In this document: positions 40,921 through 46,033 of the stretch, one piece after another | How positions within the stretch are numbered: the stretch's first letter is position 1 | How the letters are laid out: each line of letters begins with the position of its first letter | NCBI GenBank assembly: GCA_044892505.1 | Contig: CM097883.1 | Location: 284,146,001-284,210,000 of the forward strand | Direction: 5' to 3' | Length of the DNA stretch: 64,000 nucleotides | Source: Schmidtea nova | Lineage: Eukaryota | Made by a program: the position numbers and the translations under genes | Notes under the pieces: model-generated | Told to the model about the DNA's origin: nothing | Database searches by the model: none | What the model saw: the letters and a program-made list of their open reading frames with translations, nothing else

Positions 40921-41651
40921 TGTTTCAGCCAAAGTTTGCCTGAGCAAACTTTGGCTATTTTTGTGTGTGTATGTTAAAAATGTCTTATAGGCCTGTGTGC
41001 GCATTTTTACCGCTTGGTGTTCATAATTTATGTTGTTCACGCGTCTGTGTGCGCGATTAATTGGTAATTTTTGGATTATTGAGAATTAGATAGGTAATTG
41101 ATTTTTAGATTTAATATTTTAGAATTTTAGGGTTTTCTGTGAATTATTTTGTGTTGTTTAAATACTCCAATTGAGTATTTTAGATTTTGGATTTTTCAGT
41201 TTCGAATTAGAATTTTGATTAATGTGGAATTTCGATTATGTTGGAATCAATTTGGAATTTTTGTAATTATGGTTTCGAAAATGGAATTCTCCTCGTGTAA
41301 TGTTCAGAATTGATGCTCAATGCTTAATGTCAGAAGATTTACCATGCTTCGTAGCACAAAGCAGTTCTCATACTACTGTACGAAGAGATAATTTGCTAGA
41401 TGATACCATTAGCCAGTCGCAGCGTTATGGTCTCTTCGATTATGGTCTCTTTGAAATGTATCCTGAATCAAGACTCTGCTGGTTTAACAAAATGATATTT
41501 GATGACGATTTAACCCAGTTTACTGTGATCGGTAGATTGTTTGGTCTGGCAATTTACAATAACTTTATGATTGATCCTCAATCTCCTCTTGTAATGTTCA
41601 AAACATTGGCCAATAAAATCATTGAAAGGGCGTTACGTTTTATCACAAACA
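40921..41651 (+). repeat. 5' LTR (731 bp) containing a HECT fragment and AATAAA at 41612
   Basis: Direct repeat of 45303-46033; starts TGTTTCAG, ends ACAAACA. Confidence 0.95.
41300..41610 (+). pseudogene. HECT E3 ligase (HERC3/4-like) N-lobe fragment inside the LTR
   Basis: VRRDNLLDD, YGLFEMYPESRLCWFN, FTVIGRLFGLAIYNNFMIDPQSPLVMFKTL vs HERC-type VRR..IV.D, YGMF.Y..DSRLIWF, F.LIG..CGLAIYN...VD..FPLALYKKL; internal deletion, no catalytic C-lobe. Confidence 0.8.
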
Positions 41652-41655
41652 TTTC

Positions 41656-41673
41656 TGGTAGCAGAGCGTGGTT
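41656..41673 (+). promoter_or_regulatory. Primer-binding site complementary to initiator tRNA-Met
   Basis: TGGTAGCAGAGCGTGGTT 4 nt after the LTR; animal tRNAi-Met ends ...CTCTGCTACCA. Confidence 0.85.
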
Positions 41674-42004
41674 CCCATCGGGGGACCACGTGTTCTCTGG
41701 ATCATTCGGAATATGGTTCTGGCTATCCAGCCAGAACAAGGTATTTAAATGCAATATTTTTGAATTTTTATTTGAAGTTTTTTGTATATATGAATGTAGA
41801 ATTTTTTATGGTTTATTTGAATTTTTTTGGGTTGAAGCATTTCCCCCTCTGCCCTTTGCCATCTCTTGCGGTGGGTTGGGTCCATTAGGGGACCAGAAAA
41901 GATGCTGCTATGGGCCCCAGCATTCTTTTCAATTGGGGGACGAAATAGCCAGGAGAACAGATGGATTTAGGAGATCTGTTCCTTTAATTTGAAAAAATAA
42001 AACG

Positions 42005-42163
42005 GGTGGGGCTTGTGTGAATAAGGGGTGTCTTCCAAAAGAAATGATGTATAATACAGCGATGATTAGAGAGATAGGGCGAGAGGTTAAAAATTATGGA
42101 TATAAAGTCAATTATGGGTGTTTCAACTGGGAAATCATTAAGCTAAAGCGAGATAGTTATATA
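42005..42163 (+). pseudogene. GSR: Glutathione reductase fragment (redox-active disulfide motif)
   Basis: GGACVNKGCLPKEMMYNTA...YGY....[16 protein letters not shown] vs GR GGTCVNVGCVPKKVMWNTA...YGF....GKFNWRVIKEKRDAYV; in a different frame from the following ORF. Confidence 0.8.
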
Positions 42164-45100
42164 TAAAAAATCTGAATAATAGTTTTGAAGTAAAATCTAC
42201 ATGTGGGGATACGTTTTTGGGTGGGGAAGATTTTGATAATGTGCTTTTACAATGTATCGGTAATGAATTTAAACGTGATCAAGGCGTTGATGTTAATAAA
42301 GACCCTATGGCTATACAGAGAGTTAGAGAAGCAGCTGAAAATGCTACAATTGAATTGTCATCAGCTGTTCAAACGGACATTAATCTTCCATATTTGACGA
42401 TGGATAATACAGGACTTAAACATTTGGGTTTAAGGTTCACACGGTCAAAGTTAGAGCAATTAGTGGAGCACCTAATTAAGAGAACAATTGAACCTTGTGA
42501 AAAAGGTATTAAAGATGCAGAGGTAAAGACATCGGACATTAAAGAAGTGTTGTTAGTTGGTGGGATGACAAGAATGCCTAAAGTTCAAGAAACTGTACAG
42601 AAACCTTTCGGTAGAGTTCTTAGTAAGAGTGTGAATCCAGATGAAGCTGTTGCAATGGGTGCAGCAATAGAGGGAGGAGTTCTTGCTGAGTATGTGAATG
42701 AGGTATTATTGCTAGATGTTACACCGCTTTCGTTGGGTGTTGAAATTCGGGGCGGAGTTTTCAGTAAGTTAATTAATCGAAATGCGACTATTCCCACCAA
42801 GGAATCAGCTCTCGGTCTAGTTTTGAGATTGGGAGGGGGAATGCAAATATTTGTAAAAACGTTAACAGGGAAAACTATTACCCTGGAAGTTGAATCAAGT
42901 GACACAATAGAAAAGGTAAAAACGAAAATTCAAGACAAAGAGGGAATCCCACCTGATCAACAGAGATTGATATTTGCGGGTAAACAATTGGAAGGCGGAA
43001 GAATCTTGGCAGATTACAACATACAAAAGGAATCTACTCTTCATCTTGTTCTTCGTTTAAGAGGCGGTAATGATGAGGAAGAGTTCAAAAGTTTATGGAC
43101 CCGTCGGCGATCTAAAAAATGGAAAGTAACTCGAGCGCGTAACTTATTGTTGGCAGAAATGGTCGGGGAAATAAAGGACACACTTGTATTATATGAAAAA
43201 GAGTTTGAGGATACATTGGACGAGTGGCTAAGACTTGTCGAGTTGTGTGACAAATTAAATAAGAAGGAGGAATTAGAATTAGTGGAAAAAGATATCTGGG
43301 AGCTCGAAACAAAAAAAGAAGAGATAGATAAGATAATGCAAAAAAGAACAGAACAAAGTGTTGTGAGCGAGGGGTCAAAGACATCGGAATATGAGGCGCC
43401 AAGAGAAAAGAAGAGTTTAAATCGGTTGCAGAAAATAAAGATTCCGATTTTCGATGGGAAAGTTGTCGAGTTTGAGACGTGGAAAGCGGCCTTCAATACG
43501 GTAATAGATACGGCAGATGGAACAGCCGAAGATAAAATGCTGCATCTTAGGCAGTACTTGTTAGGTGAGCCTCTGAGATTGATAGAGCCACTGGGTTATA
43601 CCGCCGAAGGCTACAAGATGGCGAAAGAGAAATTGGAAAGGCGTTACGGAGGTGAAGAACGTAGCTACCTGATTATGTTAGAAGCTGTAGACAAGTTTCG
43701 GCCGGTTCGCGAAGGAGAAATAAAAGACTTGGATAGTTTCGTTGGATTGTTGGAATCCATGGAGGTACGGTTTAAGGAAATTGGAAGAGACGAGGACCTA
43801 CAGAGAGGCTGTCTATTGCACCAATTGTTAAAGAAATTGCCAGCTTCTCTACCTATGCAATGGAAAAGAGAGCAAGCAACAGATGAAAGTGAGGAGTCAG
43901 TAAAACGGTTAAAGGAGTGGGTGCAAAGGGAAGCCGAACTAATACGAGCGACAAATGAGATATTATATGGATTTGATCAGGAAAAGGATTTCAATTGGCA
44001 AGACGGGCAGAGAAACTTCAAGGCGTCTGAAAAGGTTGACAGGAAGAGGTACTCACACTTTACAACCGCTTGCAATGATGTAAAACGAAACGCGAGTAAG
44101 GGTGGAGAACGAGTAACGGCACTAAGAGGTGGGAAACCAAATGTGAACAGGTCAATGGAGACTTGTCAAAGAGAACAGTGTGAAGAGGAATGTATCGAGA
44201 GTTTTGCACCTAAAGCTCAGGAAGTAGTTCTTGGTGAGGTTCGAACTGGTGATGGTGAATTGAATTCAGGGCGAAGTAAGAATAGCGCAGTGATTAGTGG
44301 TGTGTCTGGTGAAATGATTGATAACTCTGAGTCGGTTGATATTGCAAGCGAAGATGGAATAAATACTTCTTCAAACGATTTAGTACAAGAAGTAATGACG
44401 GAAATTGAACCTACAATGTCAGTAAAAAATGAGCAAGCAGTAAGTGAATATAATTTTGAAGAAAACGGCATTGTCGATGAGAAAATTGTAGAAAATATTA
44501 ACGATATTAAAGAAAACTGCATGGTCGATGAGAAAATTGTGGAAAATATTAGCGATACTGAAGAAAATTGTAATTTTGGGGAACTTATTGGAGAGAACTC
44601 TTTTAATGGTGGAAATATTAGGCAAGGAATAGTCAAAAATTCCAATGTTGATAAAAGTGACGAAGGAAAAGTTATTAAAAGTGAAACAAATCTAGAAGAT
44701 AATGGAAAAGTTATAAAAAATGTCAGTATAAAATGGGAAAAAGTAGAAACGATTGAACTTATAAATTGCCCAGTTATAATTGCAGAGAAAACAGGTAGTG
44801 AGCAGTCAGCTTATCTTCCGATAGAAGGTAAAGTTGCAATTAGTGGCAATGAAATGGAATCATTTGACAAAGTTGATCATGGTTCAAATGTTGATAATGA
44901 AGTTCTTGTTGATAAGTCGGATTTAGTAACACGACTTCATTCAAAGATAGAAAATCTTGAAAGTAAAATAAAAACGGGCGAATTGGAATATAAAAGTGAA
45001 ATTAGAAGGTTAGAAGAAAAGATAAACAATTGTGCGGAAAGTGTAGAAACATTAGCAGTGGAAATGGAAAATATAAACAGCATTAGCGATAAATTGGTAA

Positions 45101-45372
45101 AGGTAAATTTGGAAATAAAAATGTCCATATGTTGGAGGGGGTGTATCCAGGATAGTACAAGAGAATTAATGATCGAAGAAATGTTCAAAGACAAAAACAA
45201 ATATAAGCCGAAGTGGAAGAATAAAGTTAGGAAGTTGAAGGTTGGCCCCCCAGAGATGAATAGGTCGGTTGATCCGCTAGAAGGGATCAAGGGGGGGGGA
45301 AATGTTTCAGCCAAAGTTTGCCTGAGCAAACTTTGGCTATTTTTGTGTGTGTATGTTAAAAATGTCTTATAG
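42157..45372 (+). CDS. Chimeric open frame: mtHsp70 fragment - partial Ub - ubiquitin - BEL/Pao-type Gag - acidic tail
   Basis: No stop from 42157 to 45372 (track ORF 1051 aa from 42217; first ATG at 42307); ends inside the 3' LTR. Confidence 0.85.
42181..42798 (+). other. HSPA9: Mitochondrial Hsp70 (mortalin) fragment, intronless
   Basis: [79 protein letters not shown]; several lesions at conserved positions. Confidence 0.9.
42841..43068 (+). other. UB: Ubiquitin (76 aa), preceded by a 14-aa C-terminal remnant of another Ub unit (42799-42840)
   Basis: [76 protein letters not shown]; remnant [14 protein letters not shown]. Confidence 0.98.
43069..44100 (+). other. gag: BEL/Pao-type Gag (DUF1759-like)
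   Basis: [26 protein letters not shown]...[46 protein letters not shown]. Confidence 0.85.
45289..45302 (+). promoter_or_regulatory. Polypurine tract
   Basis: AAGGGGGGGGGAAA directly abutting the TG of the 3' LTR. Confidence 0.85.
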
Positions 45373-46033
45373 GCCTGTGTGCGCATTTTTACCGCTTGGT
45401 GTTCATAATTTATGTTGTTCACGCGTCTGTGTGCGCGATTAATTGGTAATTTTTGGATTATTGAGAATTAGATAGGTAATTGATTTTTAGATTTAATATT
45501 TTAGAATTTTAGGGTTTTCTGTGAATTATTTTGTGTTGTTTAAATACTCCAATTGAGTATTTTAGATTTTGGATTTTTCAGTTTCGAATTAGAATTTTGA
45601 TTAATGTGGAATTTCGATTATGTTGGAATCAATTTGGAATTTTTGTAATTATGGTTTCGAAAATGGAATTCTCCTCGTGTAATGTTCAGAATTGATGCTC
45701 AATGCTTAATGTCAGAAGATTTACCATGCTTCGTAGCACAAAGCAGTTCTCATACTACTGTACGAAGAGATAATTTGCTAGATGATACCATTAGCCAGTC
45801 GCAGCGTTATGGTCTCTTCGATTATGGTCTCTTTGAAATGTATCCTGAATCAAGACTCTGCTGGTTTAACAAAATGATATTTGATGACGATTTAACCCAG
45901 TTTACTGTGATCGGTAGATTGTTTGGTCTGGCAATTTACAATAACTTTATGATTGATCCTCAATCTCCTCTTGTAATGTTCAAAACATTGGCCAATAAAA
46001 TCATTGAAAGGGCGTTACGTTTTATCACAAACA
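45303..46033 (+). repeat. 3' LTR (731 bp)
   Basis: Direct repeat of 40921-41651, followed by TSD ACTAA. Confidence 0.95.

Follow-up and report, generated by a model that had tools for sequence, protein, structure and literature searches.

A recently inserted gag-only Bel/Pao retroelement with old host-gene cargo and a ubiquitin-gag fusion that is probably inherited

The 64-kb stretch of DNA analysed here, called the window throughout (64,000 nucleotides of contig CM097883.1), contains at positions 40921–46033 a long terminal repeat (LTR) retrotransposon that carries pieces of four host genes. The element is probably a recent copy of a gag-only, non-autonomous member of the Bel/Pao group, in which the host-gene cargo is old, the fusion of ubiquitin to gag is inherited, and the cargo was captured through template switching. 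Its features, in order along the window, are as follows.

40916–40920, no strand assigned: left target-site duplication (TSD), ACTAA; the same 5 nt stand at the right end.
40921–41651, plus strand: 5' LTR of 731 bp, TG..CA, with 0 mismatches to the 3' LTR; its sole AATAAA is at 41612–41617.
41375–41617, plus strand (second copy at 45757–45999, in the 3' LTR): piece of a UBE3A-like HECT ligase within the LTR, from Pfam and a UBE3A match.
41652–41745, plus strand: structured leader with two perfect hairpins, from minimum free energy (MFE) and shuffled sequences.
41656–41673, plus strand: 18-nt primer-binding site (PBS), able to pair with the 3' end of an initiator-like tRNA-Met(CAT).
41741–41837, plus strand: AT-rich 97-nt segment of the form GT...AG, read from the sequence; intron status not established.
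41999–42163, plus strand: glutathione-reductase piece of about 55 codons in a frame of its own, from a match to the human enzyme.
42157–45372, plus strand: single open reading frame (ORF) of 1071 codons, with its stop within the 3' LTR.
42184–42804, plus strand: piece of a mitochondrial Hsp70 (mortalin), 207 codons, from Pfam HSP70.
42805–42840, plus strand: tail of a preceding ubiquitin unit, 12 codons, from ubiquitin profile positions 63–76.
42841–43068, plus strand: complete ubiquitin unit, 76 codons, ending RLRGG (Pfam ubiquitin, 3.8e-30).
43069 to about 44100, plus strand: Bel/Pao gag, with DUF1759 at 43450–43875, from Pfam and a fold model.
44101–45297, plus strand: orphan C-terminal extension of about 400 codons, with no library relative and no Pfam family.
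45289–45302, plus strand: polypurine tract (PPT) adjoining the 3' LTR, from the sequence.
45303–46033, plus strand: 3' LTR, identical to the 5' LTR by sequence comparison.
46034–46038, no strand assigned: right TSD, ACTAA, the same as the left.

By structure, with its LTRs, TSD, PBS and PPT, 40921–46033 is confirmed as a complete LTR retrotransposon. The two bounding LTRs are direct repeats, both copies run from TG to CA, and none of their 731 positions differs. A 35-nt pattern taken from the LTR start matches only at the two LTRs within the window, where the chance expectation is 0, and no further copy of the LTR repeat occurs anywhere in the 64 kb. Because the LTRs are identical and the 5-bp TSD is intact, the insertion is very recent. 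An earlier note on this DNA had described the same LTR, PBS, PPT and TSD anatomy, the identity of the LTRs and a recent insertion, and these descriptions hold.

The chimeric frame at 42157–45372 joins element and host-derived sequence in the order Hsp70 piece, ubiquitin tail, ubiquitin, gag and orphan tail. The gag belongs to the Bel/Pao type. Pfam identifies it as DUF1759 (4.2e-12), its frame contains neither a stop nor a frameshift, and its closest full-length relatives carry Peptidase_A17, reverse transcriptase and integrase domains; a pol of this type is present in relatives P0127, P0133, P0160 and L057. An AlphaFold2 model built on 91 relatives (predicted local distance difference test score 87.8) has three long N-terminal helices followed by an all-helical domain, and the best solved fold matches of the capsid domain are the PNMA2 and Copia capsids (PNMA2 probability 1.00, template modelling score 0.57). 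Scoring of the gag part against 1.84 billion representative proteins yielded 2160 relatives, the best of them only 38–40% identical. A word-indexed protein search with gag plus tail (578–1839 aa window) found nothing and was probably swamped by low-complexity words; the same type of search, started from an alignment of six gags, recovered one weak match and P0252, which was itself in the alignment, and nothing else. When metagenomes were scanned with gag as a single protein, 165 pattern matches were obtained, 0 of which were confirmed.

Pol is missing as a whole and is not broken by scattered stops. Pfam gives only DUF1759 for the gag part of the element, and tblastn with five Bel/Pao gag-pol proteins matches the window almost only in gag, with no match from protease, reverse transcriptase or integrase. 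The zinc knuckles that are present after gag in relatives were likewise not found after the window gag. Since pol, with its Peptidase_A17, reverse transcriptase and integrase, is missing, the element is a non-autonomous derivative and not, by gene content, a full Bel/Pao member. The earlier note had correctly reported the absence of pol, but gag escaped it, as did the single frame that joins the Hsp70 piece, ubiquitin and gag. Downstream of gag, the orphan tail is acidic and Asn-rich, runs for about 400 codons and ends in a coiled-coil-like stretch; no library match reaches past gag residue ~358, and no Pfam family scores above threshold in the tail. It contains an in-frame 51-bp tandem duplication at 44453–44554, the copies of which are 88% identical. 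Codon-position GC content follows the order GC1>GC2>GC3 in the Hsp70, ubiquitin and orphan-tail sections, a pattern typical of coding sequence, and GC1>GC3>GC2 in gag.

Comparisons with related elements indicate that the ubiquitin-gag arrangement is older than this element. First, ubiquitin lies directly ahead of gag in six relatives (P0121/L003, P0122, P0125/L002, P0152/L006, P0210/L004 and P0252/L005), the gags of which are only 24–39% identical. Second, the window element and these six share the same junction, consisting of the ubiquitin C-terminus, a short acidic stretch and a homologous first gag helix; this shared junction is the main argument for a common origin of the ubiquitin-bearing elements. 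Third, on the reverse strand of JGI contig Ga0209893_1000166 (L057), the same 18-nt PBS as in the window precedes one uninterrupted reading frame of 2168 codons, which encodes a diverged ubiquitin domain (Pfam 4.5e-10), DUF1759 and a full Pao-type pol. L057 has the look of an intact autonomous element; it differs from the direct fusions in that additional residues separate Gly-Gly from gag. The six direct fusions and L057 together make at least seven relatives with a ubiquitin domain before gag. They stem from independent assemblies, those of the six direct fusions being separate ENA or JGI assemblies or MetaClust entries. The fusion shared by these relatives, together with the autonomous L057, argues that ubiquitin-gag is a lineage trait and not a recent private capture. 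A neighbour-joining gag tree groups the ubiquitin-bearing elements, with bootstrap support too low for the grouping to be relied upon.

The manner in which these ubiquitin domains have diverged is uneven. Seven of them could be aligned, and L73, G75 and G76 are kept in 7/7, whereas K48 is kept in 5/7, K63 in 4/7 and the initiator Met (Met1) in 2/7; once P0122 is counted, Gly-Gly is kept in 7/8. Judged from this alignment, the conserved part is the hydrolase-recognised C-terminus and not the chain-building lysines. Because the ubiquitin of most members has no start codon of its own, translation must begin upstream. The domains of the lineage are 25–92% identical to ubiquitin, and their identity to one another (22–76% among clade members) does not track the identity of the gags (18–39%). 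The window ubiquitin is the least decayed of the clade and the only one in which a clear tail of a preceding unit survives, which fits renewal through template switching onto host polyubiquitin mRNA, guided by homology; an alternative is constraint that differs between lineages.

Foreign pieces are also present in some of the relatives. A Pfam scan covered 91 of 150 relatives. In P0125 (L002, ENA ERZ27314303), an Hsp90 piece (Pfam HSP90 profile 283–348), ubiquitin and gag lie within one called protein; the Hsp90 piece is in frame and directly before ubiquitin, the same place that is occupied in the window by the Hsp70 piece. P0123 (L128) has, downstream of gag, a CFAP58 coiled-coil piece as well as CCCH zinc fingers, and before gag only a residual ubiquitin C-terminus and junction; upstream there is a different reading frame. 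One further relative carries a CC149 piece. A chaperone piece is present in 2/6 of the leaders inspected. Literature searches that combined gag, LTR-retrotransposon and Pao/BEL with ubiquitin found no ubiquitin-gag fusion in LTR retrotransposons within the searchable literature, and a genome-wide Bel/Pao survey, which describes two 'Flow' families in Schmidtea mediterranea, contains 0 mentions of ubiquitin (PMC3118150). As far as searched, the ubiquitin-gag lineage is previously undescribed in that literature.

All four host-derived pieces are in sense orientation, which fits capture at the RNA level, and they are uninterrupted internal coding segments without poly(A). Homology and Pfam matches bear out the HECT ligase, glutathione reductase, mitochondrial Hsp70 and polyubiquitin identities that the earlier note had proposed. 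The HECT piece (Pfam HECT 3.8e-08) has UBE3A as its best solved relative (3.9e-09), from which it differs by a single internal gap and a single short tandem duplication; it is located inside the LTR, not in the internal region, and is consequently present twice. The glutathione-reductase piece matches residues 38–90 of the human enzyme (5.2e-12), covers the redox-active CxxxxC region, and lies upstream of the long ORF in a different frame. The Hsp70 piece (Pfam HSP70 1e-82, profile 209–416; best solved relative human mortalin) takes in part of the nucleotide-binding domain, reaches the first part of the substrate-binding domain and is in frame with ubiquitin and gag. The 12-codon tail of an earlier ubiquitin unit is the signature of a polyubiquitin mRNA source. 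With the mortalin gene of S. mansoni as a proxy from another species, at least 2 introns fall within the interval homologous to the Hsp70 piece, the piece is colinear with the mRNA, and neither of its ends falls at an intron position of that proxy gene.

The age of the cargo is set by its divergence. The Hsp70 piece is 82–83% identical to two planarian mortalins and 73% identical to the schistosome protein; on the evidence of this one diverged fragment, the host is most likely a triclad planarian. At 154 sites where three flatworm mortalins agree, the piece has 19 private changes, compared with 2–3 in the planarian mortalins. The ubiquitin is identical to the canonical protein at 70/76 positions, and these 6/76 changes affect a host protein that is essentially invariant. 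Set against 0/731 differences between the LTRs, the 19 Hsp70 changes and the 6/76 ubiquitin changes place the captures long before the insertion. The cargo is old: it was carried and copied long before this insertion, and it has drifted. A planarian mortalin transcript (L001) was considered for dating and rejected; it is 72% identical to the Hsp70 piece at the nucleotide level and its synonymous sites are saturated, so that it comes from another species and is unable to date the capture.

The most probable course of events begins with an ancestor in a Bel/Pao lineage that primed on initiator-type tRNA-Met and whose Gag was headed by a ubiquitin-family domain. Host deubiquitinases may cut after Gly-Gly, as in polyubiquitin and ubiquitin-ribosomal-protein precursors, and such a cleavage would free a Gag with a defined N-terminus and discard the upstream peptide. 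With that peptide discarded, foreign coding sequence that landed in the leader would be tolerated. The Hsp70, glutathione-reductase and HECT pieces would have entered as reverse transcriptase switched templates onto co-packaged, abundant host mRNAs, among which stress-induced and very abundant species would be the likeliest accidental templates, and the ubiquitin with the tail of its preceding unit was probably renewed by the same template switching. Sequence that landed between the PPT and the 3' end of the RNA, or between R and the PBS, would be copied into both LTRs in the next cycle, and the location of the HECT piece within the LTR would be accounted for in this way. The element, having lost pol and the nucleocapsid knuckles, would need the enzymes of a helper. 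Template switching between co-packaged RNAs makes chimeric LTR elements such as Bs1, Veju and BARE-2 (PMC13317346), and sense, internal, poly(A)-less, mRNA-colinear pieces are the pattern that it produces. The serial transduction of host mRNAs proposed earlier is thus retained in so far as there are four sense pieces that fit RNA capture, but not as a set of recent events, nor with ubiquitin as a private acquisition. A wider generalisation, that a widespread animal Bel/Pao lineage uses ubiquitin as a host-cleaved module, accumulates in-frame chaperone pieces in its leader and renews its ubiquitin, which would account for a decay of ubiquitin uncoupled from gag divergence, is offered tentatively and is given somewhat less than an even chance.

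The PBS, TGGTAGCAGAGCGTGGTT, begins 4 nt downstream of the 5' LTR, occurs once in the window, and matches without exception, as its complement, the 3'-terminal 18 nt of an initiator-like tRNA-Met(CAT) in metagenome contigs L049 and L109; neither tRNA genes nor Rfam families were found in the window itself. The same 18-mer is present in at least 120 metagenome contigs (L008–L127), mostly with CA 0–5 nt upstream, the origin of which (termite-gut, marine-worm and soil samples) is judged from contig names; initiator tRNA-Met priming is thus widespread among invertebrate LTR elements. Two of these contigs, L114 and L115, are Bel/Pao elements with the same PBS and without ubiquitin. L005 begins with the same 24 nt as the window element, namely CA, TTTC and the PBS, and the leaders show no likeness beyond these 24 nt around the PBS. 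The leader at 41652–41745 forms two perfect hairpins, one of 10 bp that overlaps the 3' half of the PBS and a second of 9 bp, and it folds with an MFE of -42.4 kcal/mol (z = -5.3), a stability equalled by 0/200 shuffles. Further coding pieces had been suspected at 41675–41990, but a Pfam search of 41651–41990 found no family, and this region is taken to be the element's own leader rather than more cargo. The segment at 41741–41837 is AT-rich and does begin with GT and end with AG, as had been reported; its flanks, searched unjoined, lack protein homology, no tool calls it an intron, and it is common to no relative. Between the only AATAAA of the LTR and the end of the LTR there are 34 nt, which suggests a very short U5 and would place the HECT piece in U3 and/or R.

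Several observations weigh against the interpretation preferred here. The long ORF has its first in-frame ATG downstream of about 35 other ATGs, so that translation of the fusion is uncertain. Deubiquitinase cleavage after Gly-Gly is inferred from the sequence. Bootstrap values for the gag tree, calculated with a different and partly saturated distance, do not exceed 23%, and the monophyly of the ubiquitin-bearing elements is not resolved by them. No second copy of the family, helper element or same-genome parental gene was present among the searched collections. The drift of ubiquitin in the window lineage (6/76) is not below that of the Hsp70 piece (about 16/154), and the window copy alone therefore gives no evidence of extra constraint on ubiquitin. 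Finally, simulation gives a 7–11% chance that the Hsp70 frame would stay open after 8–10% neutral drift, a value only suggestive of constraint.

This last result bears on the rather unlikely possibility that the captured pieces were retained for function, such as chaperone or ubiquitin-system mimicry or stress-linked expression, and are not tolerated passengers. The open Hsp70 frame would be in keeping with it, as would the presence in two lineages of different chaperone pieces (Hsp70 and Hsp90) in frame at the same position before ubiquitin, and the origin of all four sources in proteostasis or redox stress pathways. However, each piece is a partial domain that is unable to fold as its parent does, the Hsp70 piece is altered at invariant positions and the glutathione-reductase piece is out of frame, and chaperone pieces occur in only two of the six leaders examined. 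The abundance that makes stress mRNAs the likeliest accidental templates would also account for the pathways represented.

It is distinctly unlikely that a non-autonomous, still-mobile family made four separate and recent mRNA transductions, all of them private to it. The four pieces are real and all sense, the LTRs are identical, and the window ubiquitin is unusually near the host protein and retains the tail of a preceding unit, which fits a comparatively young acquisition or renewal. Against this stand the identical fusion point in six relatives with highly diverged gags and the ubiquitin of L057 in the same position with the same PBS; a private transduction of ubiquitin is therefore not supported. 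Nor can the cargo be regarded as recent, because the private Hsp70 changes fall at conserved sites and the fragments long predate the insertion.

Alternatively, the locus could be a domesticated chimeric host gene, made of the Hsp70 piece, ubiquitin, a capsid and a new tail, that merely retains LTRs. Such a gene would agree with the intact 1071-codon frame, the 400-residue orphan tail of coding-like codon-position composition and the loss of pol and zinc knuckles, yet the identical 731-bp LTRs, TSD, PBS and PPT are those of a very recent transposition product and are normally lacking from domesticated gag genes, which makes this explanation very unlikely. An assembly chimera of unrelated reads is scarcely credible, for although the window is repeat-rich and has 12 runs of N, no N lies within 40500–46500, the LTR pair is perfect and the TSD matches, the reading frame is continuous over three junctions, and independent assemblies are alike in having Hsp90 piece-ubiquitin-gag on one contig and ubiquitin-gag-pol on L057.

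Host-gene capture by LTR elements is well documented in plants and retroviruses and rare in invertebrate Bel/Pao elements; the window element represents a clear-cut case from an animal, with four source genes and the piece of one of them in the LTR. If processing by deubiquitinases takes place, a retroelement would rely on its host to mature the N-terminus of its capsid, and this would provide a natural explanation for the foreign coding sequence tolerated upstream. Gene models annotated as 'Hsp70-like', 'Hsp90-like' or 'polyubiquitin-like' in flatworm and other invertebrate genomes could then be retrotransposon cargo.

Other features were observed in the window. Close to the element, a 199-aa ORF without a Pfam family (40247–40846, plus strand) ends about 75 nt before the insertion site, and two (TA)n microsatellites at 39461–39524 and 47123–47186, whose 3' flanks resemble each other (83% over 64 nt), stand on either side of the element, about 1.4 kb and 1.1 kb away from it; they may be a dispersed repeat. 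Gypsy-like remains at 11754–14969 (plus strand) comprise a gag with three CCHC knuckles followed by reverse transcriptase-like ORFs in several frames. A Penelope-like ORF of 686 aa with RVT_1 and a GIY-YIG-like C-terminus is located at 17412–19472 (minus strand), and an inverted duplicate of its C-terminal 120 residues adjoins it at 19298–19783 (plus strand), beside an N run. Two consecutive ORFs at 25279–26766 (plus strand) resemble hAT/ZBED-type transposases, with only a weak zinc-finger match in Pfam. An intronless ORF of ~322 aa with a TFIIS/Med26-type helical bundle (IWS1-like) is present in three copies on the minus strand (29826–30794, 57608–58579 and 61499–62470); the latter two are identical and 3891 bp apart, indicating a recent tandem segmental duplication at 54–63 kb. 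Another repeat, with a weak DUF7041 match, has two copies that are 70% identical (34225–34805 and 48439–49019, plus strand), and there is a reverse transcriptase-like ORF at 49727–50155. The N-termini of the repeats at 34.2 kb and 48.3 kb look ubiquitin-like by eye and were rejected as candidates, as the clade ubiquitin profile does not detect them.

Several known systems resemble the window element in part. In polyubiquitin, in ubiquitin-ribosomal protein genes and in the host ubiquitin insertions in the polyproteins of cytopathic pestiviruses, host hydrolases cut precisely after Gly-Gly. The window element has in common with these natural fusions and insertions a complete ubiquitin that ends in Gly-Gly directly before another protein, but processing is established in the natural fusions, whereas here it is inferred from the sequence. 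In acutely transforming retroviruses, spliced host sequence fused to gag replaces replication genes and the virus becomes helper-dependent. Host mRNA capture and the loss of pol are shared with the window element, but the window pieces are small partial domains with no evidence of a complete or active host function.

Among retrotransposons, maize Bs1, which carries three transduced host gene segments and a hybrid ORF with gag (PMC13317346), is similarly a pol-defective LTR element with several sense, partial host segments in a chimeric frame with gag; the origin of both is probably capture at the RNA level, and both are low-complexity. Bs1 is a plant element of another superfamily, whereas the window element is an animal Bel/Pao with one piece in the LTR and a ubiquitin common to a lineage that has an autonomous member. 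In BARE-2 and Veju, aberrant template switching likewise brings foreign sequence into the LTRs or the interior (PMC13317346), the foreign sequence is present in both LTRs, and the elements are non-autonomous and partner-dependent. Their foreign sequence derives from another retrotransposon or from an undefined source, whereas the window LTR contains a coding fragment of a host HECT ligase. The planarian Burro elements (PMC6431247) are probably from the same host group and are also LTR elements with host-type domains, some of them linked to ubiquitination. Burro, however, is a giant autonomous Gypsy element with whole domains in its polyprotein, whereas the window element is a 5.1-kb gag-only Bel/Pao that carries fragments.

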